A stretch of DNA of 64,000 bases from Utricularia gibba. Its lineage: Eukaryota; Plantae; Magnoliophyta. This document shows, one piece after another, positions 15,290 through 64,000 of the stretch. The notes under the pieces were generated by a model. It worked only from the letters and a program-made list of their open reading frames with translations, was not told the origin of the DNA and did no database searches. The stretch spans positions 3,081,731 through 3,145,730 of the forward strand of contig NEEC01000014.1 of the NCBI GenBank assembly GCA_002189035.1, written 5' to 3'. The position numbers were made by a program, and so were the translations under genes. Position 1 is the stretch's first letter. Every line of letters begins with the position of its first letter.

Positions 15290-18200
15290 AAAATATCAGC
15301 ACAATGACACTGAGGAATGGGAAAAAAAAGCGTTGTAGGGAATTATTCCAATCTCATGACATAGAAATAGGAATTGTTGCTTTCACATTGAAGTTATGGA
15401 AGCACTATCTACATGGGGTGAAGTCATGTGTTTTAAGAGTTGGAAATACTTGTTTACTCAAAAGAAGAGAACATGAGTCTAAGGAAATGGATTGAAACGA
15501 TCAGGCAAGGCTGCTTGCGTGCACGATGACAGCAAATTAAAGAACCTCGAAGTTAGAACCTTACGACACATTGGCTAAAACGACAAGTACAAGGACACGA
15601 AGAATGCAGAAACTTGGTGTCCTGAGCGTTGGTCATTTGAGATGTGAAAAGATAGGTTAGTTGATCCTAACTCAATTGGAGTGAAGCAAAAGATCTTATA
15701 TGAACCAAATGTACAACCGTTTGTCAACAAAATGAATGATGACTTGAGAGCAAGCTGGTGCAACATCCCAAAGCATTAAAGAAGAAAAATACCTAAGTCC
15801 TAGAGGGAAGCAACAAGCAAGGAGATTCCCGAATGAAAGTTTGATCATATCACAATGCACCTCATAGTGGGAATACCATGAAGAATCATGAAGAGCCATG
15901 CTATTAGGGTTAATCTAGGCAGATTGACCAAAGTTTCACATCACATTTTCCTGCAGTAGGACAACATGAAACCATCAACAAGCTCGCTCAGGTGCAATGA
16001 GATCCAAAAGCAATTGCATGGAGGGCAAAACGATTTTCATTGACATTTTTTCAGTTTTTTGCCAAAAGCAATGAGATCCGGAATGGAAAGAGTTCTTCCG
16101 TGTTTTTTTAACCATTTTCTCCTTGTTTGTTCTTCGTTGCGTCAAGAGTGTAGAAGACCACGTCCTTTTCTTGTTTAATTTGGTACTTCAAACTCCGTTT
16201 AGAGTCCTTGAAATCATTTCTGGATGCCTCAACCATTCCGCTTATGGGCAAGGCACCCTGTTGTTTGCTTCCCAAATGAGTTTTACCCTATAGATGCGTA
16301 GGGAACATTCATGGTTCCCTCCGTACGTGCTATGTGAACATGTGTTCGAAATTGGAGACGGGTTTTGACCCACGCCAGTAGCAACGAGGTTTTAGCCATG
16401 GGATTCATGACTAAAAATGAAAGACGTGCGGGAGGCATCCTCATGGGCTTAGCCACGCAAAAAGGGCAAGGAAAACATGTTTGTCCATGATAGGGTGTGC
16501 GTTTGGAGGTGGTGGTGACTTCGTTGGTCTTCGGATCACCACTCATGAACTTCGAAAGCACATGACCAAAATGCTAAGACACGGAGGCGATGGCTAGGTC
16601 AATGGATTTCATCGAAGATATGCACTATGGGACTCACTTTGTGGTTATGTGCTTGTTCCTTGGTTTTTATCCTCCGTACCTCTTTATTTTCTTCTTACCC
16701 TAATCGTAGTAGGATGACCACTATATTGTTTACGCTTCTTCCAGGAGAATAGTTGAAGGTGTGGTGATCAACCGAAGTAGGAGTTTGGGCTGTAACAAGT
16801 TGTGCAGGGGTCTTCGAAACGCTGTACAAACGACAACAATGTCACGAGATATATGCTATGTAGGTGAAACGTAGTTCCTTTTGGTATGAGTTCATGGATA
16901 TGTAACCAACATAATGACATTTTACCACGTTGTATTAGAGTTGCGTTACCCTTCATCCTAGCGTTCATTAAGGCTTGGCATTCGTATCTCATGCGTCATG
17001 GTCCCTGGTCATGGGTCATGACAACTTCAAGCTCTCGGTTTGCTGTCGACATGCGAACATCAGAACAGGATATCCGTTCGTACGCTGAGAACGATTTTCA
17101 TGAACTCTATTCGCACCCCTCGGCTGTGGTGCACTGTGTGCTCGTTTTCGGAATGTTAGTGGGCATAATTTGATGAAATCAATGGGAACCTTGAGTTGTA
17201 TACGCATTGAAAATCATCTTATGAGCTGAACGCAATTGCAGGCATGCAGCACGCAGCACATGAGCAGTTCACATGCCTGAGGCATAGGGAGGTATATGTA
17301 CTTGTTATGGTCTGTGACATCCAATGCTGGGGTTTAGCATATTACCTCTCTAATGATCATGGTTATGTATGAAATCAATAAGGGATGGGGCCCACACCGG
17401 TATGGGGGTTGTTTTTATTAACCAATGAAGATGAAGCAAGTGCTATCTAAAGGAAGGACCACATGGCAACCTCAGGATAGAGGGTATGCTGACTCATGGA
17501 GTCTCTTAAGTTCTGGAGGATATAGTTGCTTTGAGTTGTTGAGGAGATACCTTAGGAAGTAGAGTTGTGGAAGGAAGGGGGTGTTAGAGCTAAAGAGGAA
17601 GGAATTTCGTGGAATTAGCCATAAGAAAGGGATTACTTCTGTAGGAAGGTAAGTGGGATGAGTGCTACTGTTTTTAGAAGCATGTCTTGATGCTTCTCTG
17701 GAACATATGCGATTAATTGCCTATGTGTTGTTATATGTTGTCTTAGAAAGATTTCTTTCATGTTTTCATTAACCCGTTTTTCTTCCCTGTTCTTCTTTGT
17801 GTGAAAAGTCCAGCAGGGCACGTCCTTCTGATCTTAATGCTTCAAATCTATTTAGAGTCCCTAAAATTCTTCTTTCAGAACCTAATTTGTTATTTTCCAA
17901 GGATTAGGTGCCCTTGTTGGTCAGTTTCCAAACGGGTATTCCCTTTTGAAGTGTATAGAGTGCTCAATGTTTTTCCCTACGTGCTATGTGAACTTATGAT
18001 AGGAAATGGAGAGGAGTGTGGACCCACGCTCCTAGCAACATGGTTTTAACCATGGGATTCATGGCTAAATATGTCAGACATGTCTGAGGCATCCCTATGG
18101 GGTAAGCCAGAAAAGAAAGGCCAGGGAACACGTTATATGCATGCTATGGTCTGAGTTTAGAGGTGGTGTTCGGTTGGTGGCTCTTCTGAACACTACTAAA

Positions 18201-20056
18201 GGACTTAGGCAATACATGGCCCATTTCCTAAGATCTGGAGGTGATGCCTAAGTTGAAGGGTCAAGGGGATTGGGCAAAGATAGAGAATGGGACTCACTAC
18301 ATGGATATGTGCTTGGCTTTGAGATTTTATGCTCAAACACTCTTTCTTCACTTCATGCACGTTTATCTTTTACCAAACTTCAGTAGCATGACCACTTCAT
18401 GTTTTAACTTGTTCCAGGTGTAGAGGGGAATGGCTGAAGGTCTGGTGGTCAACCAAACTAGAGGTTTTCCCATAGAAGTTGTGGCATGTCGTGAACAGCT
18501 GTTGAAACCTTAGCTATGTTGTGAGGAATGTGCTAAGTAGGCTGGACATAGTTCCTTTTGCATGTTTGAACGGTTGCGAGTTAATATATATGTAGCCAAC
18601 TTAATGTTATTTCTCCATGCTACAAAAGGGGTTAAGTAGCCTTGAGTCCTAACGTTTGATGGGGTTTGGCAGTCATGTCTCATGCCTCTTGGGCCCTAGG
18701 CATGGGTCCTGACAGTACTGAATTTGAGGAGGCTTAGGGGCATGATCCTCTCAAGATTTCGAGGGTGGCCACAACAACACGGAAAACATTGGAGACGAGA
18801 AGGAATTCAAGAGGTTTAGAGGCGTTCTAGAGTGTCCTACGAGTCTTGGGGCTAGAGTGACCGTTGATAACCACATGATCCATTATTGGTGCTACGGCGT
18901 TTCGATCGTTGGAGTTAAGTTTAGGTTATCATGTGCAAAGCGTAAGACACAGAGGACATTCCGAAAACGTCATCTAGGACGAGACATGTTCACTATGGGT
19001 CCACGCTGATTCCCTTTGGATCAACAAACGCCCTGTTGTATTCATGGGGTTAAGGACAAGTGTGCTTGTTGCTTCTGTGGATGACTCTGTGATTGTGTTC
19101 ATATATGCTATTCTGATTTATCCCCGGGATGAGGAGCAGCATGGGCAGCTTCTTGGAGCCGGTTTGCAGCGTTTGCGGGGCTGTCAGTTGTACGGCAAGT
19201 TCAGTAAAGATGATTTCCCGGTTTTCAAGTTCCTCGTCTCATGGACACAAAGCGTCAACAGAAGGCGCCACGGTGGATTCGAACAAATACAGTGGCGGCG
19301 GTGTCCCCTCAAGCTGAAAGTGCACAGGGGGTTTCGAGGTTGGTTGCAAACGGCAGGTTGCTATCGGAAGTTTCTTAAAGGACATTCAGGGATTGCAGTA
19401 CTCCTTCCGTGAGTGGACGAAGAAAGGAGCGAAACACTTATGGCCCGAGATTTGTGAGCGCAGTTTTCATTCCCCTAGACACCCTTACACAACCTACGAT
19501 GGGAGGGAATATCGGTAGTCATAGTGATGCATCTCAGGATGTGCTTGATGCAGCAAGAAGGCATTAGACCATCCGGCTCTAGGAAGCCAAATCCTCATGA
19601 ATAAAGTTACCCTACTCATGACGTGGAAATAGCGGTTGTTGCTTTCGCATGTTCGTTACGGAAGCACTGCCTGCATTGGGTGAAGTCGAGTGTGAAAAGA
19701 GTCACAAGTACTCGTTCACTCAAAAGGAAAAGAACACGAGGCTAATGAGATGGATTGAAGTGCTCAGGGAGGACGACCTGGTAGTCAAACACCACTCCGG
19801 TAGGGTAGCTAAGGTCGTGGATGGTGTAAAGTAGGAAGAACCCATGAAGGCATGGCCGCTTGTGCGCAGGACAGCGGATCTCTAATTAGAGGTGGTGCAA
19901 GATAGATGGCGATGCGAGGCTACTGGCACACTGAAGAAGCGCAAAGTGAAAACCCTTTACGACACACTGGCTGAAACAACAATTACAAGGACGCGAATAA
20001 TGCAAACAATGGATGCTCCGGGCGTTGGTCGTTTCAGGTGTGATCAGATAGGTTAG
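15290..20056 (+). mobile_element. Family X: degenerate Tekay-pol-derived repeat (RNaseH-INT relic, about 3 kb non-coding, then RT-RNaseH-INT relic again)
   Basis: RNaseH SHDIEIGIVAFTLKLWKHYLHG near 15350-15420; INT EIPE*KFDHITMHLIVGIP near 15820-15880; RT FMGLRTSV...VIVFIYAILIY...QLYGKFSK at 19044-19412; second RNaseH near 19610-19760. Confidence 0.75.
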
Positions 20057-20198
20057 TCCAAGATGCTGTAGCTGATCTTTTGGCTGAATTATTGACAGGA
20101 GATCCAACATCATTTGAAATGGCTGTAAAAAATCCGAAATGGAGAGAGGCCATGAAGGAAGAAATGAATTCTACTTGAAAATGAAACATGAGAGTTAG
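20057..20198 (+). mobile_element. 142-bp isolated fragment of the Ivana-like copia (RT start)
   Basis: tccaagatgctgtag...ttgacaggagatccaacatcatttgaa...gaaacatgagagttag matches 12700-12844 and 47882-48025. Confidence 0.85.
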
Positions 20199-20305
20199 AT
20201 GTTCTCGTATGTTGCCTTGCCGGCAATTATTGTGACAGCATGTGATTGCGAGATGTTCTCGTATGTAGCCTTGCTGGCGATCATCATAATAGCATGTGAT
20301 GCACG
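20198..20305. repeat. Two-copy 54-bp tandem repeat
   Basis: gatgttctcgtatgt(t/a)gccttgc...gcatgtgat starts at 20198 and 20252; mirrored near 59075-59180. Confidence 0.85.
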
Positions 20306-20759
20306 AAATCTGGTTATTTTGGATTGTTTTGCTGCCTTAGGATGCACGAAATTTTATTCATGATTGATGCTTTCGAGAATCATATCTTACGTGTATATGC
20401 GCAGCATGATGATGCTTTATATGTGTGTAGTCGTGGGGCATGATGGCCTTTGCACGAATTTTGATTATGATGATCATATTGGTGAATTATCGATGCATAT
20501 GATGTTTGATAATTTATTTCTGACCAAGGCATCTAGGGTCAATTAGGATTTTCGAGCTTTATGTATGAAAATCGAGGGAAATGATGCGTTATGAACGAAA
20601 GGGCAAGGGTTGTCAGGATTCCTATCTGATAGGATATCGATATCTATAGTGCAAGTGTTGCCTATGGAAAAATCCCCTATCAAATAACTAAGCTTATTCC
20701 TTCCACTGACATAAGGAGAGGAATCAAATAACTAAGCTTAGTGAATCAAATAACTAAGA

Positions 20760-21218
20760 TTCACGGTGGGTTGGCTTAACTAATTTTATCAACTTGTTGA
20801 CTAAAGCCAAGGTTGGTAAAATTGGAGGAAAGGTTGAGGTAAATAGTTTTTACATCAAGAGTTGATGACTCAATAATACAGTGGTTGTATCATAGATACA
20901 ATTGGCATGACTACCTGTTTCATTCATTAAAGCTTGTTGGCTACAGGCAAGGTGGAGATGAATGAAATGGGACACTGTCTCACTAAGAAAATGTGATTTT
21001 CTCATTTTGTCAGTAAGGGGCTGCCATCTCGAAAAACATAGTGGGAGTATATCACATTTAATAAAGACCAGTTAGATGTGATTTAAGGAACACTACATGA
21101 TGTGTTTGTTTTCTCTTCTTCCAGCGTAAATTTGAGATCCATTCTAGAGTCCAATAAGTTGGTTGGCTCGAATTTTACTGATTGGCACCGCAATTTGAGA
21201 ATTGTTCTCAAGTACGAA
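20760..21218 (+). mobile_element. gag: Angela-like copia leader and gag N-terminal relic
   Basis: 21132-21218 reads LRSILESNKLVGSNFTDWHRNLRIVLKYE, matching the Angela gag start LRSILE...L.G.NF.DW.RNLRIVL. Confidence 0.7.
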
Positions 21219-22945
21219 TTGGTTCTTCATCATTTTGTCTTCTGTTGAGTACTATTTTATCCCACCAAGTTATGGCATAATCTGTAAACTCAACAACAGC
21301 AAGCTTGATCTTCTTGGCTTCAGAATAGTTGTGGCAATCAAACACGTGCTCCACACGAGTCTCCCACTCCAAGTTGGCATTTGGATCGTTTTTCCCTTGA
21401 AAAGGAAGGTGTTTCATCTTGATGTTATCAAATTCTTTGTATTCAGTGTGTGTCTACCCCTTAGTCTTTCATCATATCTTGCATCATGATTTGACCTCCA
21501 ATTTCTTTGATATCTTCATTCTATATCATCACCTCCAGATGAATCATACTCATCAAGGTTGTTTTTATCATATCTTGCATCGTGATTTGTTTTTATTATT
21601 TCTCCTTAGTTTTTATTATTTCTTTGATATCTTCGTTCTATGGTGTGTTGGAATTCTTGTTCTACCATTGGAGATACTGTCCTCTCCTTGCTTTTTGATG
21701 TTCTTGAGAGATTCATCATGTTCCTCTAGTTTGATGCGGATTTGCTCCATGCATCTCTGCAATCTCTTAAACTCTCTTTGCATTGCAGTGAATAAGAAAC
21801 GAGCATCCATAGCATTTGATTCTTCTGTAGGGTTATTAGAGCTCCACATCCTACTTCAAGAGAAAAGTGTAGACAAAAAGAAGGAAAAAGAACAACGAAA
21901 GAAAGATAGAATTAAAAATCTAAGTGTGGTTTAAAGAGATAAAGGTGGATAGGTTAAACAGTCAGATAAGGAAAATGAGCAATATAGGAGTTGGTGATGG
22001 AAATAGTAATTATGATAAAGTAAGAGTAGGAATACCAGGATAGAAGGTAACTTGTTGTAATTAGTACAAAAGAGGTAGATAGACAATTAAAAAGAGTTAA
22101 AATGGAATATAAGTGTGACAATAGACAAAGTTGTACAATATTGACTTTTATTTTGTTTGGTAAATTGAAGATTCAATGAATTTAAGTGGCTAGACTTTTT
22201 TTTTTTTACTTTTCTATTGTTTGGTAAGTAGAAAATTCAATGGAATCAATTTGCTAACCTTCTTTCTTCCTTCAACACGTTTTTTTTTTCTTTTTGCAGC
22301 AAACCAGAAGAATAGGACAGAACAAACAAAGATAAGGAACCCCCTTTTGGTTTTTCTTTTCAGAGGAAGAGATAAGCAAAGACAAGATAAGCAAATCAGT
22401 TAGATCTGGGTTTTTTATTGGTTTCTTTTCTTTGGAACGAAACGACAACAAGATAGATAGGATATCAAGAAGAGAAAGATTGGCTTTGATACCACCTAAT
22501 ACGACCCTCCAATCAACAAGTGATTGGCAAACCAGATCTTGGTTTAGAAGAAGCAATCCCTCAAGGAAAAGAAGTTGGCCCTCAAGGATTTGAAAGATCC
22601 TTGCAACACAAACTATGAAATAGTACCACAATCACAGAATAAAGGAAGGAATTGGGAGTGATATATCACACACTAGACACCACAAGCAAGACTTGATAAG
22701 TCTGAAGTTCTACAAGAACTTAAAGAAGGAGCATTGCTCCGAAAAGTGATTACCATCCAAGTTCCCTTTTAACAAGAGTGAGGCCCTTCTTATATAGATG
22801 AAGGATTGGGTCTTCTTAGAAGAAAAGTAGTAATAATAATGTATTTGGAAATAATGGACCTTTTCTAGTCAAGTTGATCCACTTTGAGAAGGTTGAATTC
22901 TACGCCTAACGCCTCATCGCTTTGTTGATTCTCCCATAGGCCCTT
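21205..22945 (-). mobile_element. gag: CRM element 5' part: gag relic, leader, PBS and most of the 5' LTR
   Basis: gag LPFQGKNDPNANLEWETRVEHVFDCHNYSEAKKIKLAVVEFTDYAITWWD at 21208-21417; PBS tggtatcaaagcc at 22482-22494; LTR portion 22497-22945. Confidence 0.85.
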
Positions 22946-24752
22946 TGTTGATCCAAGAAAGATAGAGTCTTGGGAAGGAACAAAGAGATAATTCTTATGA
23001 GATCACCTTGGATGAAAAACGAATTATGAACAATAACAATGACCGAAAACGTAATTCACACTTTTCCTAGTAGTGTTTATATATACCCAAAACCTAGGTT
23101 ACCATCAGTGGGCCACAATCATTAAAAACATACAGAAAAGCCCAACTACTCGAACCCAACACTTTTCAACTAAAACATGACTTTATGACACAAGATTGGT
23201 ACTTCTAATCACATTCAAGCTTTGGATTGAGGCTGATCTCCAATACTCCCCCCAAGACCGAGATCTTCCAACTTGAGAAAGTCTACTGTAGTCATGAGAT
23301 TCATGTTCTTCCTTGCTACCTTAAATTGAACTCTGTTCAAACCTTTGGTGAGCCCTTCAGCAAGCTGATTCCCACTCTCAACATACTACACTTTAATCTT
23401 CTTCTCCTTGATGTAATTCCTTATGACATGATACCTGATTCTTATGTGTTTGGCTTTTTTGAAGTTTGTTGGATCCTTAGCAATGGTGATTGCAGCTCGA
23501 TTACCCATAAGCAGGTATGTAGCTTCCATCCGAATGAATCCAAGTTCGTTTAACGTCTGTCTCAACCAAACGCAATAGTTCGAAGCATGTGCTATAGAGA
23601 TGTATTCTGCTTCAGCTGTTGATTGTGCTGACACCTTTTTTTCTTTGAAAACTACACTAAATGTACTCTTGTTATCTTCAGCCATACCATAATCACAATC
23701 TGAATAGGCTCTAAGTTGGAAGACTGGTTTTTCACCTTCATAGAGATAGAACAATCCGAATTAGTAGTAGATTTTATGTACCTGAAAGCTCTTTTCACAA
23801 TTGCCATGTGAGTTGTTGGTTGTTTGTTGAGGAAGCAAGATAAGACAGTTACACAAAAACACAGGTCAGACCTTGTATGCTGGAGATAGATGAGGGTTCC
23901 AACTATACTTCTATAGGTAGTAGCATCTACATTTCTTCCTTGATTGTTTTCTCGAATCACATGTTTGTAATTCAAGGGAGTTTTTGAAGGATTGACATCT
24001 TTGAACCCAAACCTTTCAAAAAGTTCATTACAATACTTCTTCTGAGATATGAATGTTCCAACACCTTCAAGTTGATGAATTTCCCTGCCTAAATAGTAGG
24101 AAATCATTCCAAGGTCAATTATCTTGAATTCCTTTTTGAGTAGACCTTTGAATACTTCAATCTTCCTTTCATCACCTAAGGTAATCATAAGATTATCAAC
24201 ATAAACGATCATCTCCCGTTCCTTTAACATACAGTGAGTAATCACTATATGTTTTCATGAAACCAATACCCTACAGAAAGTTATCTTCATTCCATGATTT
24301 AGGAGATTGCTTCAACCCATGGAGAGATTTCTTTAGCTTCAATACTTTGTCTTCATGACCTGACACTTGAAAGCCCTTTGGTTGTCCAACAAAAACATCC
24401 TCCTCCAACACACCATTCAAAAACGCAGTCTTCACATCCATGTGATACGCGTTCCATCCATGAACCGATGAAATGGCAAGAAGTAATTTAATCGTGTCAA
24501 ATCTTGCTACTGGTGCAAAAATCTCATGAAAATTTATTCCTTTGATCTGATTATATCTTTTGGCTACTAATCTATCCTTATATTTGTTAACTAAACCATC
24601 TGCATTCATTTTTGTTTTGAATAACCACTTCAGGCCAATAGGTTTATCAACCAACTCTCGTGTTTCATTTTCAAGTATAGAATTCATTTCTTCCTTCATG
24701 GCATCTCTCCATTTCGGATTTTGTACAGCCACTTCAAATGATGTTGGATCTC
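22946..24752 (-). mobile_element. pol: Ivana-like copia copy C, 3' part (RT-RNaseH relic plus 3' LTR 22946-23245)
   Basis: RT/RNaseH ORFs at 24271-24732, 23652-24245 and 23386-23754; G-rich PPT next to the LTR; cut at 24752 by an Athila LTR. Confidence 0.9.
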
Positions 24753-25907
24753 TGATGAACGTTGGGAATGGGGTTGCTAAATGTCGCGGTTTAGCACATT
24801 CAACGCATCAAAAGAAATTTATAAACCGAGCTATTTTACTACACAAATCACAAGAATTAATGTAGCGTGGAAAGCAAGGGTTGAATCCACAGGGAATGGT
24901 TGCAATTTTCTGAAGTTCAACACAATTACTTGAAACAGGGGGGTTTTCTGGGATTTAGTTCTAATGCAGGTAAGATCTAAAATAACAGTGACTGAAAGGA
25001 ATGGGTTGCAAGGGTGAAAAGGGACTGAAATTAATATAAAGATGCAGAAAACATAAAATAAAAGTAATTTGGATGGGTTTTACACCAAGGTCTGGCTCTT
25101 GTGTCACTCAAGAGAACCCATAGACTTAAACCCATCTTAAGAACGCTTAAAGGCAAACATGAAAGGCTTAGTCAAGAACATGATTAAACGCAGAAATAAG
25201 GTCTACAGAGAATTTATCGTTCACGACAAGGTGCAAGAACATAACAGAAAGCATGTAAACGTTGAAGGAAATAGCAGCTAGTTGTTAACGAAATATAAGT
25301 GCAGAAAATAGAAAATGAAGTGTCTAGCGGTTGCTCTCGGTCATAGATCTGCTGGAAATCAAGTTTCTGGGCGAAAAGACGGTGTAAACACGTAGATCTG
25401 GAGGTCACCGGAGTCGTTCCCTGGAGAAACGGAGTTCTCCTTGCTCCCGCTCGCTCCTGTTCTCTGTCTGTGCACTCTGCGTGCACAGTGTACTCTCTCT
25501 CTTCTCTCCCTTCCTTTTCCCTTTTGCAGCTCAAAATTAAGGGTAGCATTGTTCTTTCCTGAGTCTTCTAGAAGGGAGATCTCTACTCCAAATCTTATCT
25601 TTTCAGAAGGGCGGCGACTTTCGGCGGAAAGTGACTTTTGTATAGCTTTTCTATCTCCTTTGACTTGTCAGCGCGGAAAGTGCGCTGCTACAGTACTAGC
25701 TCTTACCCTGATAAGACTTAAAACATAGACTAGACGAAATATTAGAGTTTTCTGCTCAATTGTTGCCAATTGAGTCTGTTTTCACAATAAACATATTTCA
25801 ACAGTCTAAATATGCAAAAGAAGACATTTTAGCACCCTAAGCAACATTTAACCCTACAAAACACACTTAAAAACATATATAAAAACACAATAAAAACGGT
25901 GTTATCA
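24753..25907 (-). repeat. Athila 3' LTR (1155 bp)
   Basis: Homologous to 38921-39836 (8 differences in the terminal 147 bp, plus indels); preceded by an Athila-like cttgaggacaag tract; mirrored at 53473-54627. Confidence 0.9.
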
Positions 25908-27108
25908 CACTATCCTACAACGACTCTAGACTTGTCCTCAAGTCTAAAACAGAAAATAAAACAGAAAATCGAAGATTGAGTCTGCTGAGGCAAAGAAAAG
26001 GTTTCGATTCATGCTATCCATGCAAGGAGTGAAGAGAGGAGGTAGCAAGTGCGGGTAAGAATATTGTCACTCAAGCACAGATAGTAGAAGTTACTCGCAT
26101 GCTTCATGTGTTAAAAAATCACATCTGCACGGGCACGAACTTGATCCTAACAGGCAGTGGCAGACTAATAGTGACATGTATGGGTTTTACCTTGCAAGAC
26201 ACATACAAATTGTAACAAGAATGATGGCTGAAAATGAAAATGATGCACATGGAGGTACTTAACAAGAACATAGAGACTTGAGAGCTCTTCCACTACAACA
26301 TAGAACTTAGTGACATGTATGGGTTTTACCTGTGTTCATCCTTATTCCTCCTAGAGTGGTTGGCCAGACCATTGAATATGTTCAGGGAAAATGATGAGTG
26401 CATAGTGTCTAAGCCTCAAACTCTAATTTTGTATAAGATATTTTTTTTTTACAGCACGGCTTTTCTGGTGTGCCTTCCTTTTGTACCTCTCTTCCTCTTT
26501 TTTTTTTTTTTTTTTACATATAGCTCGGCCTTTTTTTTTTAGATTTGAGCTTGCCTTTTATCATTGAAAATTTTTTATGTGCGTCGGCCACCATCTATGT
26601 GTCTAACTCAGCACTCCTCAAACATCCACATACTAGCAAGCCACATACAAGCTATTCACAAGAAAGTCCTAGTGCAGATAGAGCAAAACACAGGTCGCAT
26701 GCATGCACTTTTCTACAAAATCTGGCTACCCTCATATAAGTCTTACGCATGTAGGAACTAAAAAGGCTGAGTCCTAACAGAAGCGAAGAGGTAGGTATCC
26801 TACATGTCTAGAATGAACCGAAATTCCTAAACATGCTCAGCAGTACTCGAGGCAACAAAAGACAGACAAACAACTACAAAACACATGCAAAGACTCATAA
26901 AACACAGAACAAAATTTACAAAACAAAGAGGGTAAAGGTCAGTCAAGGCTTAGGAGGAACAGTAGGACTTACGCATGTCTGTAAGTCAAATAGGGTCTCC
27001 AAATACATCTTCAGGGTTCCTACAGTTCTTCTCAACTCATGAATTTCCTTCAAGCAGCAGTAGGGGCCGCACTCTTGGGACTACCCCTCACCGGGGTTCT
27101 GAAATTAA

Positions 27109-27366: not shown

Positions 27367-27555
27367 CAGAAACTAACAGTGGGACAAACAAATTCAACAA
27401 GATAACGGATTGCAACCTCACAAAATCAGAATGCATAACTAAAAGTACAAAAAGAAAATAAAAATGCACAAAGGAAATAAAAGTAGAAAATACTGGTTAC
27501 CTCCCAGCAAGGACCCTAGAATAAGTCTTAGGGTAAGACTTAAGTGCAGAATCAC

Positions 27556-41201: not shown

Positions 41202-41300
41202 CTAATCGAACCCAACACTTTTTTACTAAAACATGACTTTACGACACAAAATTAGTGCTTCTAATCACCTTCAACCTTTGGATTGAGGCTGATCTAGCAT
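41202..41300 (-). mobile_element. Remnant of copia C 5' LTR
   Basis: Shares the short C-type signature (actaaaacatgacttta.gacac) with 23150-23245; followed by CCCTT, matching 22941-22945. Confidence 0.75.
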
Positions 41301-43537: not shown

Positions 43538-43569
43538 ATGCAAAATCATTCCTAGTGTATGAACCGAGA

Positions 43570-53400: not shown

Positions 53401-54627
53401 TCAATCTTCGATTTTCTGTTTTATTTTCTGTTTTAGACTTGAGGACAAGTCTAGAGTCGTTGTAGGATAGTGTGATAACACCGTTTTTATTGTGTTTTTA
53501 TATATGTTTTTAAGTGTGTTTTGTAGGGTTAAATGTTGCTTAGGGTGCTAAAATGTCTTCTTTTGCATATTTAGACTGTTGAAATATGTTTATTGTGAAA
53601 ACAGACTCAATTGGCAACAATTGAGCAGAAAACTCTAATATTTCGTCTAGTCTATGTTTTAAGTCTTATCAGGGTAAGAGCTAGTACTGTAGCAGCGCAC
53701 TTTCCGCGCTGACAAGTCAAAGGAGATAGAAAAGCTATACAAAAGTCACTTTCCGCCGAAAGTCGCCGCCCTTCTGAAAAGATAAGATTTGGAGTAGAGA
53801 TCTCCCTTCTAGAAGACTCAGGAAAGAACAATGCTACCCTTAATTTTGAGCTGCAAAAGGGAAAAGGAAGGGAGAGAAGAGAGAGAGTACACTGTGCACG
53901 CAGAGTGCACAGACAGAGAACAGGAGCGAGCGGGAGCAAGGAGAACTCCGTTTCTCCAGGGAACGACTCCGGTGACCTCCAGATCTACGTGTTTACACCG
54001 TCTTTTCGCCCAGAAACTTGATTTCCAGCAGATCTATGACCGAGAGCAACCGCTAGACACTTCATTTTCTATTTTCTGCACTTATATTTCGTTAACAACT
54101 AGCTGCTATTTCCTTCAACGTTTACATGCTTTCTGTTATGTTCTTGCACCTTGTCGTGAACGATAAATTCTCTGTAGACCTTATTTCTGCGTTTAATCAT
54201 GTTCTTGACTAAGCCTTTCATGTTTGCCTTTAAGCGTTCTTAAGATGGGTTTAAGTCTATGGGTTCTCTTGAGTGACACAAGAGCCAGACCTTGGTGTAA
54301 AACCCATCCAAATTACTTTTATTTTATGTTTTCTGCATCTTTATATTAATTTCAGTCCCTTTTCACCCTTGCAACCCATTCCTTTCAGTCACTGTTATTT
54401 TAGATCTTACCTGCATTAGAACTAAATCCCAGAAAACCCCCCTGTTTCAAGTAATTGTGTTGAACTTCAGAAAATTGCAACCATTCCCTGTGGATTCAAC
54501 CCTTGCTTTCCACGCTACATTAATTCTTGTGATTTGTGTAGTAAAATAGCTCGGTTTATAAATTTCTTTTGATGCGTTGAATGTGCTAAACCGCGACATT
54601 TAGCAACCCCATTCCCAACGTTCATCA
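50434..54627 (+). mobile_element. Athila 3' part (integrase, 3' region, 3' LTR 53473-54627), mirror copy
   Basis: ORFs 50698-51123 and 51098-51823 mirror 28256-28681 and 27556-28281. Confidence 0.92.
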
Positions 54628-56433
54628 GAGATCCAACATCATTTGAAGTGGCTGTACAAAATCCGAAATGGAGAGATGCCATGAAGGAAGAAATGAATTC
54701 TATACTTGAAAATGAAACACGAGAGTTGGTTGATAAACCTATTGGCCTGAAGTGGTTATTCAAAACAAAAATGAATGCAGATGGTTTAGTTAACAAATAT
54801 AAGGATAGATTAGTAGCCAAAAGATATAATCAGATCAAAGGAATAAATTTTCATGAGATTTTTGCACCAGTAGCAAGATTTGACACGATTAAATTACTTC
54901 TTGCCATTTCATCGGTTCATGGATGGAACGCGTATCACATGGATGTGAAGACTGCGTTTTTGAATGGTGTGTTGGAGGAGGATGTTTTTGTTGGACAACC
55001 AAAGGGCTTTCAAGTGTCAGGTCATGAAGACAAAGTATTGAAGCTAAAGAAATCTCTCCATGGGTTGAAGCAATCTCCTAAATCATGGAATGAAGATAAC
55101 TTTCTGTAGGGTATTGGTTTCATGAAAACATATAGTGATTACTCACTGTATGTTAAAGGAACGGGAGATGATCGTTTATGTTGATAATCTTATGATTACC
55201 TTAGGTGATGAAAGGAAGATTGAAGTATTCAAAGGTCTACTCAAAAAGGAATTCAAGATAATTGACCTTGGAATGATTTCCTACTATTTAGGCAGGGAAA
55301 TTCATCAACTTGAAGGTGTTGGAACATTCATATCTCAGAAGAAGTATTGTAATGAACTTTTTGAAAGGTTTGGGTTCAAAGATGTCAATCCTTCAAAAAC
55401 TCCCTTGAATTACAAACATGTGATTCGAGAAAACAATCAAGGAAGAAATGTAGATGCTACTACCTATAGAAGTATAGTTGGAACCCTCATCTATCTCCAG
55501 CATACAAGGTCTGACCTGTGTTTTTGTGTAACTGTCTTATCTTGCTTCCTCAACAAACAACCAACAACTCACATGGCAATTGTGAAAAGAGCTTTCAGGT
55601 ACATAAAATCTACTACTAATTCGGATTGTTCTATCTCTATGAAGGTGAAAAACCAGTCTTCCAACTTAGAGCCTATTCAGATTGTGATTATGGTATGGCT
55701 GAAGATAACAAGAGTACATTTAGTGTAGTTTTCAAAGAAAAAAAGGTGTCAGCACAATCAACAGCTGAAGCAGAATACATCTCTATAGCACATGCTTCGA
55801 ACTATTGCGTTTGGTTGAGACAGACGTTAAACGAACTTGGATTCATTCGGATGGAAGCTACATACCTGCTTATGGGTAATCGAGCTGCAATCACCATTGC
55901 TAAGGATCCAACAAACTTCAAAAAAGCCAAACACATAAGAATCAGGTATCATGTCATAAGGAATTACATCAAGGAGAAGAAGATTAAAGTGTAGTATGTT
56001 GAGAGTGGGAATCAGCTTGCTGAAGGGCTCACCAAAGGTTTGAACAGAGTTCAATTTAAGGTAGCAAGGAAGAACATGAATCTCATGACTACAGTAGACT
56101 TTCTCAAGTTGGAAGATCTCGGTCTTGGGGGAGTATTGGAGATCAGCCTCAATCCAAAGCTTGAATGTGATTAGAAGTACCAATCTTGTGTCATAAAGTC
56201 ATGTTTTAGTTGAAAAGTGTTGGGTTCGAGTAGTTGGGCTTTTCTGTATGTTTTTAATGATTGTGGCCCACTGATGGTAACCTAGGTTTTGGGTATATAT
56301 AAACACTACTAGGAAAAGTGTGAATTACGTTTTCGGTCATTGTTATTGTTCATAATTCGTTTTTCATCCAAGGTGATCTCATAAGAATTATCTCTTTGTT
56401 CCTTCCCAAGACTCTATCTTTCTTGGATCAACA
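54628..56433 (+). mobile_element. pol: Copia C 3' part, mirror copy (3' LTR 56134-56433)
   Basis: ORFs 54648-55109, 55135-55728 and 55626-55994 are identical in translation to their left-arm counterparts. Confidence 0.9.
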
Positions 56434-58175
56434 AAGGGCCTATGGGAGAATCAACAAAGCGATGAGGCGTTAGGCGTAGAATTCAACCTTCTCAAAGTGG
56501 ATCAACTTGACTAGAAAAGGTCCATTATTTCCAAATACATTATTATTACTACTTTTCTTCTAAGAAGACCCAATCCTTCATCTATATAAGAAGGGCCTCA
56601 CTCTTGTTAAAAGGGAACTTGGATGGTAATCACTTTTCGGAGCAATGCTCCTTCTTTAAGTTCTTGTAGAACTTCAGACTTATCAAGTCTTGCTTGTGGT
56701 GTCTAGTGTGTGATATATCACTCCCAATTCCTTCCTTTATTCTGTGATTGTGGTACTATTTCATAGTTTGTGTTGCAAGGATCTTTCAAATCCTTGAGGG
56801 CCAACTTCTTTTCCTTGAGGGATTGCTTCTTCTAAACCAAGATCTGGTTTGCCAATCACTTGTTGATTGGAGGGTCGTATTAGGTGGTATCAAAGCCAAT
56901 CTTTCTCTTCTTGATATCCTATCTATCTTGTTGTCGTTTCGTTCCAAAGAAAAGAAACCAATAAAAAACCCAGATCTAACTGATTTGCTTATCTTGTCTT
57001 TGCTTATCTCTTCCTCTGAAAAGAAAAACCAAAAGGGGGTTCCTTATCTTTGTTTGTTCTGTCCTATTCTTCTGGTTTGCTGCAAAAAGAAAAAAAAAAC
57101 GTGTTGAAGGAAGAAAGAAGGTTAGCAAATTGATTCCATTGAATTTTCTACTTACCAAACAATAGAAAAGTAAAAAAAAAAAAGTCTAGCCACTTAAATT
57201 CATTGAATCTTCAATTTACCAAACAAAATAAAAGTCAATATTGTACAACTTTGTCTATTGTCACACTTATATTCCATTTTAACTCTTTTTAATTGTCTAT
57301 CTACCTCTTTTGTACTAATTACAACAAGTTACCTTCTATCCTGGTATTCCTACTCTTACTTTATCATAATTACTATTTCCATCACCAACTCCTATATTGC
57401 TCATTTTCCTTATCTGACTGTTTAACCTATCCACCTTTATCTCTTTAAACCACACTTAGATTTTTAATTCTATCTTTCTTTCGTTGTTCTTTTTCCTTCT
57501 TTTTGTCTACACTTTTCTCTTGAAGTAGGATGTGGAGCTCTAATAACCCTACAGAAGAATCAAATGCTATGGATGCTCGTTTCTTATTCACTGCAATGCA
57601 AAGAGAGTTTAAGAGATTGCAGAGATGCATGGAGCAAATCCGCATCAAACTAGAGGAACATGATGAATCTCTCAAGAACATCAAAAAGCAAGGAGAGGAC
57701 AGTATCTCCAATGGTAGAACAAGAATTCCAACACACCATAGAACGAAGATATCAAAGAAATAATAAAAACTAAGGAGAAATAATAAAAACAAATCACGAT
57801 GCAAGATATGATAAAAACAACCTTGATGAGTATGATTCATCTGGAGGTGATGATATAGAATGAAGATATCAAAGAAATTGGAGGTCAAATCATGATGCAA
57901 GATATGATGAAAGACTAAGGGGTAGACACACACTGAATACAAAGAATTTGATAACATCAAGATGAAACACCTTCCTTTTCAAGGGAAAAACGATCCAAAT
58001 GCCAACTTGGAGTGGGAGACTCGTGTGGAGCACGTGTTTGATTGCCACAACTATTCTGAAGCCAAGAAGATCAAGCTTGCTGTTGTTGAGTTTACAGATT
58101 ATGCCATAACTTGGTGGGATAAAATAGTACTCAACAGAAGACAAAATGATGAAGAACCAATTCGTACTTGAGAAC
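56434..58175 (+). mobile_element. gag: CRM LTR part, PBS, leader and gag relic, mirror copy
   Basis: ORFs 57530-57763 and 57962-58171 mirror 21616-21849 and 21208-21417. Confidence 0.85.
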
Positions 58176-59322
58176 AATTCTCAAATTGCGGTGCCAATCA
58201 GTAAAATTCGAGCCAACCAACTTATTGGACTCTAGAATGGATCTCAAATTTACGCTGGAAGAAGAGAAAACAAACACATCATGTAGTGTTCCTTAAATCA
58301 CATCTAACTGGTCTTTATTAAATGTGATATACTCCCACTATGTTTTTCGAGATGGCAGCCCCTTACTGACAAAATGAGAAAATCACATTTTCTTAGTGAG
58401 ACAGTGTCCCATTTCATTCATCTCCACCTTGCCTGTAGCCAACAAGCTTTAATGAATGAAACAGGTAGTCATGCCAATTGTATCTATGATACAACCACTG
58501 TATTATTGAGTCATCAACTCTTGATGTAAAAACTATTTACCTCAACCTTTCCTCCAATTTTACCAACCTTGGCTTTAGTCAACAAGTTGATAAAATTAGT
58601 TAAGCCAACCCACCGTGAATCTTAGTTATTTGATTCACTAAGCTTAGTTATTTGATTCCTCTCCTTATGTCAGTGGAAGGAATAAGCTTAGTTATTTGAT
58701 AGGGGATTTTTCCATAGGCAACACTTGCACTATAGATATCGATATCCTATCAGATAGGAATCCTGACAACCCTTGCCCTTTCGTTCATAACGCATCATTT
58801 CCCTCGATTTTCATACATAAAGCTCGAAAATCCTAATTGACCCTAGATGCCTTGGTCAGAAATAAATTATCAAACATCATATGCATCGATAATTCACCAA
58901 TATGATCATCATAATCAAAATTCGTGCAAAGGCCATCATGCCCCACGACTACACACATATAAAGCATCATCATGCTGCGCATATACACGTAAGATATGAT
59001 TCTCGAAAGCATCAATCATGAATAAAATTTCGTGCATCCTAAGGCAGCAAAACAATCCAAAATAACCAGATTTCGTGCATCACATGCTATTATGATGATC
59101 GCCAGCAAGGCTACATACGAGAACATCTCGCAATCACATGCTGTCACAATAATTGCCGGCAAGGCAACATACGAGAACATCTAACTCTCATGTTTCATTT
59201 TCAAGTAGAATTCATTTCTTCCTTCATGGCCTCTCTCCATTTCGGATTTTTTACAGCCATTTCAAATGATGTTGGATCTCCTGTCAATAATTCAGCCAAA
59301 AGATCAGCTACAGCATCTTGGA

Positions 59323-62300
59323 CTAACCTATCTGATCACACCTGAAACGACCAACGCCCGGAGCATCCATTGTTTGCATTATTCGCGTCCTTGTAATTGT
59401 TGTTTCAGCCAGTGTGTCGTAAAGGGTTTTCACTTTGCGCTTCTTCAGTGTGCCAGTAGCCTCGCATCGCCATCTATCTTGCACCACCTCTAATTAGAGA
59501 TCCGCTGTCCTGCGCACAAGCGGCCATGCCTTCATGGGTTCTTCCTACTTTACACCATCCACGACCTTAGCTACCCTACCGGAGTGGTTTTGACTACCAG
59601 GTCGTCCTCCCTGAGCACTTCAATCCATCTCATTAGCCTCGTGTTCTTTTCCTTTTGAGTGAACGAGTACTTGTGACTCTTTTCACACTCGACTTCACCC
59701 AATGCAGGCAGTGCTTCCGTAACGAACATGCGAAAGCAACAACCGCTATTTCCACGTCATGAGTAGGGTAACTTTATTCATGAGGATTGGCTTCCTAGAG
59801 CCGGATGGTCTAATGCCTTCTTGCTGCATCAAGCACATCCTGAGATGCATCACTATGACTACCGATATTCCCTCCCATCGTAGGTTGTGTAAGGGTGTCT
59901 AGGGGAATGAAAACTGCGCTCACAAATCTCGGGCCATAAGTGTTTCGCTCCTTTCTTCGTCCACTCACGGAAGGAGTACTGCAATCCCTGAATGTCCTTT
60001 AAGAAACTTCCGATAGCAACCTGCCGTTTGCAACAACCTCGAAACCCCCTGTGCACTTTCAGCTTGAGGGGACACCGCCGCCACTGTATTTGTTCGAATC
60101 CACCGTGGCGCCTTCTGTTGACGCTTTGTGTCCATGAGACGAGGAACTTGAAAACCGGGAAATCATCTTTACTGAACTTGCCGTACAACTGACAGCCCGC
60201 AAACGCTGCAAACCGGCTCCAAGAAGCTGCCCATGCTGCTCCTCATCCCGGGGATAAATCAGAATAGCATATGAACACAATCACAGAGTCATCCACAGAA
60301 GCAACAAGCACACTTGTCCTTAACCCCATGAATACAACAGGGCGTTTGTTGATCCAAAGGGAATCAGCGTGGACCCATAGTGAACATGTCTCGTCCTAGA
60401 TGACGTTTTCGGAATGTCCTCTGTGTCTTACGCTTTGCACATGATAACCTAAACTTAACTCCAACGATCGAAACGCCGTAGCACCAATAATGGATCATGT
60501 GGTTATCAACGGTCACTCTAGCCCCAAGACTCGTAGGACACTCTAGAACGCCTCTAAACCTCTTGAATTCCTTCTCGTCTCCAATGTTTTCCGTGTTGTG
60601 TTGGCCACCCTCGAAATCTTGAGAGGATCATGCCCCTAAGCCTCCTCAAATTCAGTACTGTCAGGACCATGCCTAGGGCCAAGAGCATGAGACATGACTG
60701 CCAAACCCCATCAAACGTTAGGACTCAAGGCTACTTAACCCCTTTTGTAGCATGGAGAAATAACATTAAGTTGGCTACATATATATTAACTCGCAACCGT
60801 TCAAACATGCAAAAGGAACTATGTCCAGCCTACTTAGCACATTCCTCACAACATAGCTAAGGTTTCAACAGCTGTTCACGACATGCCACAACTTCTATGG
60901 GAAAACCTCTAGTTTGGTTGACCACCAGACCTTCAGCCATTCCCCTCTACACCTGGAACAAGTTAAAACATGAAGTGGTCATGCTACTGAAGTTTGGTAA
61001 AAGATAAACGTGCATGAAGTGAAGAAAGAGTGTTTGAGCATAAAATCTCAAAGCCAAGCACATATCCATGTAGTGAGTCCCATTCTCTATCTTTGCCCAA
61101 TCCCCTTGACCCTTCAACTTAGGCATCACCTCCAGATCTTAGGAAATGGCATGTATTGCCTAAGTCCTTTAGTAGTGTTCAGAAGAGCCACCAACCGAAC
61201 ACCACCTCTAAACTCAGACCATAGCATGCATAACGTGTTCCCTGGCCTTTCTTTTCTGGCTTACCCCATAGGGATGCCTCAGACATGTCTGACATATTTA
61301 GCCATGAATCCCATGGTTAAAACCATGTTGCTAGGAGCGTGGGTCCACACTCCTCTCCATTTCCTATCATAAGTTCATAGCACGTAGGGAAAAACATTGA
61401 GCACTCTATACACTTCAAAGGGAATACCCGTTTGGAAACTGACCAACAAGGGCACCTAATCCTTGGAAAATAACAAATTAGGTTCTGAAAGAAGAATTTT
61501 AGGGACTCTAAATAGATTTGAAGCATTAAGATCAGAAGGACGTGCCCTGCTGGACTTTTCACACAAAGAAGAACAGGGAAGAAAAACGGGTTAATGAAAA
61601 CATGAAAGAAATCTTTCTAAGACAACATATAACAACACATAGGCAATTAATCGCATATGTTCCAGAGAAGCATCAAGACATGCTTCTAAAAACAGTAGCA
61701 CTCATCCACTTACCTTCCTACAGAAGTAATCCCTTTCTTATGGCTAATTCCACGAAATTCCTTCCTCTTTAGCTCTAACACCCCCTTCCTTCCACAACTC
61801 TACTTCCTAAGGTATCTCCTCAACAACTCAAAGCAACTATATCCTCCAGAACTTAAGACTCCATGAGTCAGCATACCCTCTATCCTGAGGTTGCCATGTG
61901 GTCCTTCCTTTAGATAGCACTTGCTTCATCTTCATTGGTTAATAAAACAACCCCATACCGGTGTGGGCCCCATCCCTTATTGATTTCATACATAACCATG
62001 ATCATTAGAGAGGTAATATGCTAAACCCCAGCATTGGATGTCACAGACCATAACAAGTACATATACCTCCCTATGCCTCAGGCATGTGAACTGCTCATGT
62101 GCTGCGTGCTGCATGCCTGCAATTGCGTTCAGCTCATAAGATGATTTTCAATGCGTATACAACTCAAGGTTCCCATTGATTTCATCAAATTATGCCCACT
62201 AACATTCCGAAAACGAGCACACAGTGCACCACAGCCGAGGGGTGCGAATAGAGTTCATGAAAATCGTTCTCAGCGTACGAACGGATATCCTGTTCTGATG

Positions 62301-64000
62301 TTCGCATGTCGACAGCAAACCGAGAGCTTGAAGTTGTCATGACCATGACCAGGGACCATGACGCATGAGATACGAATGCCAAGCCTTAATGAACGCTAGG
62401 ATGAAGGGTAACGCAACTCTAATACAACGTGGTAAAATGTCATTATGTTGGTTACATATCCATGAACTCATACCAAAAGGAACTACGTTTCACCTACATA
62501 GCATATATCTCGTGACATTGTTGTCGTTTGTACAGCGTTTCGAAGACCCTGCACAACTTGTTACAGCCCAAACTCCTACTTCGGTTGATCACCACACCTT
62601 CAACTATTCTCCTGGAAGAAGCGTAAACAATATAGTGGTCATCCTACTACGATTAGGGTAAGAAGAAAATAAAGAGGTACGGAGGATAAAAACCAAGGAA
62701 CAAGCACATAACCACAAAGTGAGTCCCATAGTGCATATCTTCGATGAAATCCATTGACCTAGCCATCGCCTCCGTGTCTTAGCATTTTGGTCATGTGCTT
62801 TCGAAGTTCATGAGTGGTGATCCGAAGACCAACGAAGTCACCACCACCTCCAAACGCACACCCTATCATGGACAAACATGTTTTCCTTGCCCTTTTTGCG
62901 TGGCTAAGCCCATGAGGATGCCTCCGCACGTCTTTCATTTTTAGTCATGAATCCCATGGCTAAAACCTCGTTGCTACTGGCGTGGGTCAAAACCCGTCTC
63001 AATTTCGAACACATGTTCACATAGCACGTACGGAGGGAACCATGAATGTTCCCTACGCATCTATAGGGTAAAAACTCATTTGGGAAGCAAACAACAGGGT
63101 GCCTTGCCCATAAGCGGAATGGTTGAGGCATCCAGAAATGATTTCAAGGACTCTAAACGGAGTTTGAAGTACCAAATTAAACAAGAAAAGGACGTGGTCT
63201 TCTACACTCTTGACGCAACGAAGAACAAACAAGGAGAAATGGTTAAAAAAACACGGAAGAACTCTTTCCATTCCGGATCTCATTGCTTTTGGCAAAAAAC
63301 TGAAAAAATGTCAATGAAAATCGTTTGCCCCATGCAATTGCTTTTGGATCTCATTGCACCTGAGCGAGCTTGTTGATGGTTTCATGTTGTCCTACTGCAG
63401 GAAAATGTGATGTGAAACTTTGGTCAATCTGCCTAGATTAACCCTAATAGCATGGCTCTTCATGATTCATGGTATTCCCACTATGAGGTGCATTGTGATA
63501 TGATCAAACTTTCATTCGGGAATCTCCTTGCTTGTTGCTTCCCTCTAGGACTTAGGTATTTTTCTTCTTTAATGCTTTGGGATGTTGCACCAGCTTGCTC
63601 TCAAGTCATCATTCATTTTGTTGACAAACGGTTGTACATTGGTTCATATAAAGATCTTTGCTTCACTCCAATTGAGTTAGGATCAACTAACCTATCTTTT
63701 CACATCTCAAATGACCAACGCTCAGGACACCAAGTTTCTGCATTCTTCGTGTCCTTGTACTTGTCGTTTTAGCCAATGTGTCGTAAGGTTCTAACTTCGA
63801 GGTTCTTTAATTTGCTGTCATCGTGCACGCAAGCAGCCTTGCCTGATCGTTTCAATCCATTTCCTTAGACTCATGTTCTCTTCTTTTGAGTAAACAAGTA
63901 TTTCCAACTCTTAAAACACATGACTTCACCCCATGTAGATAGTGCTTCCATAACTTCAATGTGAAAGCAACAATTCCTATTTCTATGTCATGAGATTGGA
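59323..64000 (-). mobile_element. Family X, mirror copy with many extra small deletions
   Basis: Reverse complement of 15347-20056; the same ORFs are frameshifted relative to the left arm. Confidence 0.8.

Follow-up and report, generated by a model that had tools for sequence, protein, structure and literature searches.

Two near-identical copies of a nested retrotransposon landscape face each other across a spacer in this window (the whole stretch of 64,000 nucleotides analyzed here): positions 15347-34926 (the left arm and native copy, + strand) are the reverse complement of 44454-64000 (the right arm, - strand, cut by the window end), with 99.69% identity over 19.6 kb and no indel longer than 3 bp. 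The structure is of a known type, a repeat-mediated inverted duplication in nested plant-type retrotransposons. As its origin we favor a genuine DNA-level inverted duplication through copia homology with later homogenization of the arms, a reading to which we give about an even chance, over a false duplication made during assembly; sequence alone cannot separate the two.

Arms, spacer, and boundaries

Self-BLAST of the window returned a single inverted HSP (15347-34933 against 64000-44448; 99.689% identity in 19,591 columns, with 19 mismatches and 34 gap openings), a match too long to be of chance origin. Global alignment places the true end of identity at 34926 and 44454, which is the final base of a copia LTR, and resolves the last 6-7 bases of the BLAST match as gapped chance similarity. 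The arms accordingly measure 19,580 bp (left) and 19,547 bp (right), and the spacer (34927-44453) measures 9,527 bp. No inverted similarity between the two spacer halves was found at E<=1, so that identity falls from ~99% to random in a single step. There are no N gaps between the arm copies, or anywhere in the window.

Read in order, the left arm contains TE-A (a non-coding GC-rich repeat, 15347-~20057), copia fragments, the 3' half of a gypsy element, and a complete copia; the spacer holds the 5' half of the gypsy element in its left part and a TE-A-like repeat in its right part (41405-44453). Colinearity of the arms is maintained over 19.6 kb and through at least five junctions between nested elements, the same broken ORFs occur in both, and all eight left-arm ORFs of at least 150 aa recur in the right arm at identical lengths, so stops and frameshifts were copied as well. 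The initial annotation had proposed an inverted duplication with these limits, and both self-BLAST and global alignment bear it out; its further claim that the arms were copied as DNA is upheld by the nested junctions, broken ORFs, and LTR-position-specific mutations (see “Right junction”) common to both. It had also placed the outer limit beyond the window, in keeping with a right arm that is cut at 64000 and with the absence of a natural boundary at 15347, which sits within a repeat and whose partner leaves the window. The true arm is probably longer than 19.6 kb, its outer limit here being set by the window edge.

Left junction

A Ty3/gypsy element on the - strand (24753-39846, end approximate) straddles the boundary between left arm and spacer. 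Its components are a 3' LTR (24753-25746), integrase (27559-28945), RT-RNaseH (34979-36056), gag (37828-38763), and a 5' LTR (38921-39846); the LTR pair is 91-95% identical. Between its RNase H and integrase the element is interrupted by a copia, C1 (28946-34926, - strand), of 5,981 bp with TG..CA LTRs (3' LTR at 28946-29267 and 5' LTR at 34603-34926), which are 97.5% identical; its pol gene is split among four ORFs. C1 is flanked by AGATG at 28941-28945 and 34927-34931, a perfect 5-bp target duplication, and the gypsy integrase frame resumes open at 28945, across C1 from RT-RNaseH. AGATG on both sides, together with a gypsy LTR pair, gag, and RT-RNaseH facing the resuming integrase, marks this junction as native, and the left arm plus spacer can be recognized on these grounds as the ancestral state, in which a copia has inserted into a gypsy element.

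An exact-match protein query with the ORF that runs across the left junction returned no recorded sequence. In a word-index protein search, the copia integrase ORF had its best match, at 52% identity, in TNT1-like copia elements of assorted angiosperms. The copia LTR end had 0 matches in a metagenome scan, and the sole locus from the scan for the gypsy LTR start (L001) was dismissed as a chance match, with a GC content of 60% and otherwise dissimilar sequence. Rfam and tRNA scans of the window were empty.

Right junction

The right-arm copia (44454-50433, + strand) has CATCT as its outer flank (50434-50438, the reverse complement of AGATG) and TCCTC as its inner flank (44449-44453). Because these form no target duplication, the element is best described as a hybrid junction element; the junction logic of the initial annotation holds here, the right copia lacking a target-site duplication and having TCCTC as its inner flank. 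Of the gypsy element, only the 3' half recurs outside this copia (50434-54627, + strand; integrase and 3' LTR), apart from any gypsy 5' half. Inside it, a truncated fragment of the unrelated repeat TE-A (43538-44453, + strand; 84% identical to the reverse complement of 16218-17101), to which the TCCTC belongs, abuts the LTR end; it is cut off at the right copia, whereas its left-arm homologue continues. Neither the continuation of this fragment nor a further junction of LTR end with TCCTC was found elsewhere in the window, and no ORF of at least 20 aa crosses the right junction.

With copia flanks that are unmatched and identity that ends at the last LTR base, the junction between 44453 and 44454 is evidently derived, and the exact stop at the LTR end indicates that copia homology mediated the join. 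The right copia is a DNA-level copy of C1: the two share five LTR-position-specific mutations (derived states polarized with two older paralogues, three of them confined to the 3' LTR and two to the 5' LTR), matched position by position. The right arm as a whole is a copy of C1 and of all that lies beyond it, joined in inverted orientation, precisely at the LTR end, to a different site, the truncated TE-A with its TCCTC flank.

Structured differences between the arms

The arms had been called near-identical, which is true of the overall figure of 99.69% but not of its uniformity, since the differences are strongly structured; this pattern, missed in the initial annotation, holds most of the information. 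The 16 substitutions that separate the arms are confined to two patches, with 0 in the other 17 kb (substitution-free lengths of 12.7 kb and 4.3 kb). One patch, Z3 (28080-29949, partner 49430-51299), carries 9 substitutions and 2 indels and straddles the copia/gypsy junction, reaching 866 bp past the copia into the gypsy integrase; the other, Z5 (34207-34926, partner 44454-45172), occupies the 720 bp of the arm nearest the spacer and carries 7 substitutions and 1 indel. Divergence within the patches is 0.6-1%, both lie in the innermost 6.9 kb of the arm, and clustering this uneven was matched in 0 of 100,000 simulations. Viewed by element, 14 of 16 substitutions are inside the copia (binomial P = 4e-6), the central 4.26 kb of which is identical between copies, and 2 are in the 13.6 kb outside. 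The variants look biological, given 9 transitions against 7 transversions and derived states in both arms (in Z3, 5 left and 4 right); these real-looking differences could be allelic or paralogous. Because Z3 crosses the copia/gypsy junction, a second real molecule with the same junction exists.

Small deletions in the outer 4.4 kb of the right arm are of another kind. In this low-quality stretch (59589-63656), found in the right arm only, 22 gap events are missing sequence relative to the left arm, versus 1 in the left arm; 18 of the 23 are of slippage type and no clear substitution accompanies them. At 21 of 23 polarizable sites, paralogues share the left-arm state. These deletions look like consensus error, and a natural origin was rejected given the 22:1 direction bias, the share of slippage events, and the lack of accompanying substitutions. 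The stretch starts 8.3 kb past the final variant that tells the arms apart, a distance close to the length of one accurate read. It is a separate technical matter, probably a segment for which noisy long reads were used in patching or finishing where accurate ones could not separate the arms.

Origin of the duplication

Under the favored reading, a second copia of the same family (C2) would have inserted in inverted orientation at a TE-A site with the TCCTC flank. A broken end or stalled fork in C2 could then have invaded C1 and copied outward, which would have made junction 1 a hybrid copia and duplicated the outer flank in inverted orientation. Arm-to-arm gene conversion would later have homogenized most of the arms. 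Divergence of 0.6-1% in Z3 and Z5, set against 17 kb without substitution, suggests an event that is not brand new and arms that were mostly homogenized afterwards; the strong non-uniformity of substitutions is as would be expected of patchy conversion. Some observations sit less easily with a genuine duplication. An independent C2 is suggested by the TCCTC flank and truncated TE-A, yet the right inner LTR bears C1-specific mutations, which implies either a switch within the last ~165 bp or later conversion that overwrote C2. Conversion accounts only loosely for both patches lying in the innermost 6.9 kb, and the second junction required by a viable chromosome falls outside the window. Zero substitutions over 12.7 kb and 4.3 kb would also be expected from a single locus re-used, and the poor consensus in one arm suggests thinner read support there.

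The principal rival, which we regard as a serious contender that falls short of an even chance, is that the true order is X-C1-spacer-C2(inverted)-Y, and that the assembly path exited the spacer by way of the copia and then followed the C1 locus in the opposite direction. Its source could be the other haplotype (a heterotype duplication, to which the variants in Z3 and Z5 would be allelic) or re-walked graph nodes, by way of the assembler, contig merger, or patching, with Y on another contig. Such an error would account for a join that falls precisely inside a 6-kb repeat, the copies of which are identical over their central 4.26 kb, for the 12.7 kb of arm without substitution beyond the patches, and for the missing of the expected flank Y from the window. 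The right arm alone also has 4.4 kb of 22:1 deletion-biased, slippage-type differences at which paralogues side with the left arm (21/23), and this stretch resembles the error-laden, read-length “homotype” duplicates described previously (PMC9516828). Against it, the gaps that are a hallmark of false duplications in that study are absent here, as there is no N gap between the copies. Alleles of Z3 on the same copia/gypsy junction exclude plain re-use of the same reads, and an allelic origin would need 0.6-1% heterozygosity in the two patches alongside 17 kb with none. In overlap-layout assemblers each read is used a single time, so a duplicate of at least 13.6 kb of unique flank with a high-quality consensus would need a second read set; long reads normally span a 6-kb repeat.

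Two further scenarios are much harder to reconcile with the sequence. A very recent one-step event (with an age of at most a few thousand years) between C1 and C2 as independent elements, with the copia differences as a template-switching mosaic and no gene conversion, would suit the concentration of 14 of 16 substitutions inside the copia against 2 in 13.6 kb outside, and it fits the frequent early template switching that is established for break-induced replication in yeast. But Z3 continues for 866 bp beyond the copia, within the gypsy integrase, such an event would take at least three switches, and the right inner LTR shares two 5'-LTR-specific derived states with C1, interleaved with private differences, as is unexpected of an independent insertion; we consider this scenario improbable. 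Independent retrotransposition into two similar nests, or a simple inversion between inverted copias, has nothing in its favor but the presence of inverted copia copies. The former fails on 19.6-kb colinearity over at least five nested junctions with identical broken ORFs; the latter would give hybrid flanks to both copias and no duplication of the outer flank, whereas the left copia keeps a perfect target duplication. Both are refuted by the left target duplication, shared broken ORFs, and shared LTR mutations, and their probability is vanishingly small. The two alternatives offered initially, break-induced replication or sister exchange between inverted repeats and a mis-join through the copia, are precisely the ones that remain. 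A chimeric read of fold-back type, in which a template is joined to its complement, was discarded as a source since the spacer is not self-complementary.

Relation to known structures

The nearest parallel to a genuine duplication is the DUP-TRP/INV-DUP rearrangement at the human MECP2 and PLP1 loci, which is mediated by inverted low-copy repeats (PMC11293582, PMC4352052). In both cases an inverted pair of homologous repeats brackets a spacer (here the copias at 28946-34926, - strand, and 44454-50433, + strand), junction 1 is a hybrid repeat from a homologous template switch, and outside sequence reappears inverted past the other repeat. Unlike the human case, the repeats here are 6-kb copia retrotransposons in a TE nest, and the event looks older and partly homogenized; the second junction and third, direct copy that define the human structure would here lie beyond 64000.

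Fold-back inverted duplications with a normal-copy spacer (766-70,466 bp), of which 3 of 21 junctions lie in LINE/SINE homology (PMC3907307), likewise combine a single-copy spacer (9.5 kb here) with inverted homology between the distal spacer end and the duplication start (the copia here). That homology is 6 kb here versus 2-300 bp there, and those rearrangements carry a terminal deletion with telomere healing or translocation, none of which is visible in the window.

Palindromes kept more than 99% identical by arm-to-arm gene conversion are known from human Y (P6; PMC3723533), X (PMC8981503), and willow W (PMC7023750) chromosomes. Arms of more than 10 kb, identity above 99%, and a unique spacer are shared features (19.6 kb and 99.69% here), as are long identical tracts beside older divergence, which are compatible with multi-kb conversion tracts and fit an artefact too. 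In contrast, the arms here hold only dead transposons and no genes, with no sign of a sex-linked or non-recombining context. A real and possibly much larger palindrome, its dead-retrotransposon arms held identical by ongoing conversion and seeded by a copia-to-copia template switch, is a rather unlikely reading.

Assembly false duplications, a class defined by depth and k-mer evidence (PMC9516828), resemble the present case in a near-identical copy on the same scaffold, an error-laden stretch of about read length, and a few possibly allelic variants; unlike them, it has no gap, and its join is a precise homologous junction inside a repeat. The soybean I locus, an inverted gene duplication that triggers siRNA silencing (bioRxiv 10.1101/2025.01.21.634198), is comparable in that here, too, a plant-type genome has an inverted duplication from which hairpin RNA could in principle arise; this one has a 9.5-kb spacer, and its TE arms are already likely silencing targets.

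Chromosomal context and significance

The initial annotation also raised a candidate centromeric palindrome in CRM-rich chromatin and a template for very long dsRNA. None of these ideas finds support in the present analysis. TRF detected no satellite array in the 64 kb, only ten short arrays of at most 3.6 copies. In the gypsy element, a Pfam search found gag, RT, RNase H, and integrase and no chromodomain.

Real or artefact, the structure touches no gene. If it is an artefact, it flags a mis-assembled site and a patch of low quality in a public assembly, and it would inflate TE counts and fake a structural variant. If it is real, it offers a clean, base-resolved, plant-type case of transposon-mediated inverted duplication with ancestral and derived junctions side by side, in which LTR mutations provide an internal clock (shared before the event, private after), and it should help the study of how TE pairs seed palindromes and how conversion homogenizes them outside sex chromosomes.

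Extent of the inverted duplication

Comparison of the window with itself by BLAST gave one inverted match, pairing 15347-34933 with 64000-44448 at 99.689% identity; its 19,591 columns contain 19 mismatches and 34 gap openings. Global alignment of the arms shows that identity truly ends at 34926 and 44454, the extra bases of the BLAST match being gapped chance. This leaves a left arm of 19,580 bp (15347-34926), a right arm of 19,547 bp in reverse orientation (44454-64000) and a spacer of 9,527 bp (34927-44453); the largest indel between the arms is at most 3 bp. Because the two halves of the spacer have no inverted similarity to each other at E ≤ 1, arm identity drops from about 99% to the random level across a single base. 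Each of the eight left-arm ORFs of at least 150 aa is found again in the right arm at equal length. Self-comparison and global alignment thus agree with the coordinates and description of the inverted duplication in the initial annotation. The outer limit of the arms is set by the window edge; position 15347, which falls within a repeat, is no natural boundary.

Elements of the arms and spacer

Elements were mapped from Pfam scans of ORFs, LTR pairs detected by self-BLAST, and one direct translation. A minus-strand Ty3/gypsy element, recognized by Pfam and its LTR pair, runs from 24753 to about 39846. It comprises a 3′ LTR (24753-25746), an integrase with zinc-binding and core domains (27559-28945), RT-RNase H (34979-36056), gag (37828-38763), all three by Pfam, and a 5′ LTR (38921-39846). 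Its LTRs are 91-95% identical, no chromodomain was found in it by Pfam, and direct translation shows the integrase frame open from its very first codon at 28945. Nested between the RNase H and the integrase, also on the minus strand, is a 5,981-bp copia element, C1 (28946-34926), with TG..CA LTRs of 322-324 bp that are 97.5% identical and a pol gene split into four ORFs; the 5-bp target duplication bracketing it, AGATG, is perfect. Given this nesting, the arm/spacer boundary 34926|34927 falls within a single gypsy element, so the left arm remains joined to the left part of the spacer as it originally was. Both elements encode proteins of plant type; no relative of the copia integrase above 52% identity was present in the protein collection searched.

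The gypsy element was itself inserted into an older copia (22946-24752), which is cut at its RT (insertion edge 24748-24753). Neither the remainder of that copia nor a matching target duplication, ATCTC, was found beyond the gypsy 5′ LTR, which argues for another rearrangement or deletion near 39847-41400, where only a 95-bp copia LTR scrap (41201-41295) is seen.

Beyond these elements, the left arm contains older copia fragments and, from 15347 to about 20057, a GC-rich, ORF-poor repeat family, here called TE-A; a shorter TE-A relative occupies the right part of the spacer (41405-44453). Family members (15347-20057, 41405-44453, 4137-5264, and 14243-16129) have a GC content of 43-47%, LTR-like direct repeats of about 1 kb and reshuffled internal modules, and are 75-90% identical. 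TE-A ORFs gave no Pfam match, and the family may be a non-autonomous LTR element.

DNA copying of an aged copia

The four LTRs of the left and right copia elements were aligned with two older paralogues. The 3′ LTR has three derived states of its own (columns 24, 112, and 155) and the 5′ LTR two (column 160 and an AC insertion); the left and right copies have all five in common, position for position. Retrotransposition regenerates identical LTRs, so these shared states were passed on by copying of the DNA once C1 had already aged at its site, which makes the right copia a DNA copy of C1. Independent nests and a simple inversion are both refuted by the arm alignment, the recurring ORFs, and the shared LTR states. 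Six more LTR differences are private, two to each inner LTR and one to each outer LTR. A simple clock would put about five-eighths of the LTR divergence before the duplication. With the widely used rice rate assumed (1.3e-8 per site per year), and with dates only as good as that rate, the copia would be about 0.95 Myr old and arm-to-arm LTR divergence would correspond to about 0.36 Myr.

Native and derived junctions

The right copia (44454-50433) is flanked on its outer side by CATCT, the reverse complement of AGATG, and on its inner side by TCCTC; without a target duplication, it is a hybrid-flanked element. The adjoining 43538-44453 matches 16218-17101 in reverse complement at 84% identity, a similarity that reaches the LTR end, five flank bases included, and the left-arm TE-A homologue carries on past the point where the spacer copy stops. 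The spacer copy is therefore truncated at the copia, its continuation missing from the window; the missing flank would open with TCCTC and run on as TE-A-like sequence. A search of the window found no junction of an LTR end with TCCTC. A breakpoint that matches an LTR terminus to the base is what an integration site gives. These flanks mark the right junction as the derived one and the left as native. Most simply, a second copia (C2) would once have been inserted in inverted orientation at a TCCTC site and joined to the C1 locus via copia homology, a join that could have been made in the cell or in the assembler.

The primer-binding site beside the copia 5′ LTR is TGGTATCAGAGC in the right arm (44777-44794), the classic initiator-Met tRNA type, and TGGTATCATAGC in the left arm (34585-34602); the native, left copy thus has the derived base at 34594.

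Clustered differences between the arms

The 16 substitutions between the arms (9 transitions and 7 transversions) are clustered to a degree equalled in none of 100,000 uniform simulations. Nine, with two indels, lie in a 1.9-kb zone spanning the copia/gypsy junction (Z3, 28080-29949), and seven, with one indel, in the innermost 720 bp (34207-34926); the intervening 4.26 kb (29950-34206) has no differences. Polarized on paralogues, Z3 has five derived states in the left arm and four in the right. The differences in both patches look like genuine variants distinguishing two real molecules and, since Z3 spans the copia/gypsy boundary, the second of these bears the same insertion.

Farther out, 8.3 kb (19791-28079) differ by two homopolymer indels only. 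The outermost 4.4 kb (15347-19790) contain 23 gap events: the right arm lacks sequence at 22 and the left arm at one, 18 are of slippage type, and there are no clear substitutions. Spacer paralogues side with the left arm at 21 polarizable sites and with the right arm at 2. Deletions biased 22:1 in short runs, unaccompanied by substitutions, do not make a natural mutation spectrum, which identifies 59589-63656 as a poorer consensus, in the right arm only. This stretch begins 8.3 kb beyond the last distinguishing variant, roughly where accurate reads would stop separating the arms, making a noisy-read patch there plausible.

Origin of the structure

We give about even chances to a genuine repeat-mediated inverted duplication, in which a break or stalled fork in C2 would lead to invasion of the inverted C1 and outward copying, so that the copia becomes a hybrid and the outer flank is duplicated in inverted orientation. 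The proposed mechanism follows the same logic as DUP-TRP/INV-DUP events mediated by inverted LCRs, whose junction 1 is a “chimeric LCR” (PMC11293582), and as fold-back inverted duplications, in which a normal-copy spacer (766-70,466 bp) is always retained and LINE/SINE homology is sometimes involved (PMC3907307). The shared and private LTR mutations, like the two divergent patches, indicate that such an event would not be new. Arm-to-arm conversion at a later stage, of the kind described for sex-chromosome palindromes (PMC3723533, PMC7023750), could explain the 17 kb without substitutions. Lying at the edge of homology, the innermost 720 bp may have been spared such conversion. A brand-new, one-step event leaving a C1/C2 mosaic would account for the location of 14 of the 16 substitutions inside the copia (P = 4e-6) but is improbable, given C1-specific states in the right inner LTR and the extension of Z3 into the gypsy integrase.

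False duplication during assembly is a serious possibility, if one somewhat short of even. For it, the join falls in a 6-kb repeat with a centre that does not differ between the copies, and most of the arm is likewise identical. The error-laden stretch in the arm that has the derived junction recalls read-length “homotype” false duplicates, and variants that look real could be allelic, of the “heterotype” class (PMC9516828). Against it, the copies lie without a gap between them, plain re-use of the same reads is excluded by Z3, an allelic origin demands very patchy heterozygosity, and a high-quality false copy of at least 13.6 kb of flank requires a second read set. Unless falsely duplicated, the structure is of a known kind, either a palindrome or an inverted duplication mediated by repeats; sequence alone does not decide between this and a false duplication.

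The interpretation in the initial annotation is supported in part. Its reading of the region as an inverted DNA copy stands; its ideas of a candidate centromeric palindrome in CRM-rich chromatin and of a template for very long dsRNA gain no support here, and the window has no satellite arrays. New here are the assignment of native and derived junctions, an exact prediction for the missing flank, the proof of DNA copying that LTR-specific mutations provide, both divergent patches, and the stretch of low quality.

Other features of the window

No Rfam families, tRNAs or recognizable host genes were found anywhere in the 64 kb, and protein look-up returned no record of the junction-spanning ORF. 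Two metagenome scans gave nothing usable; the sole match to the 20-base gypsy LTR start (contig L001, 10902-10921) is attributed to chance, the contig being 60% GC and having no other similarity to the window. Positions 1-10800 are AT-rich (28-36% GC) with no ORF above 119 aa, and none of three ORFs tested there matched Pfam. A third, older copia of the C1 family (10831-13479, plus strand), 90-92% identical to C1 and truncated after the RT start, lies outside the duplicated block. Within the arms, at 20056-20300 (mirror 59079-59290), a 146-bp inverted copia RT scrap adjoins a 54-bp unit repeated 1.9 times.
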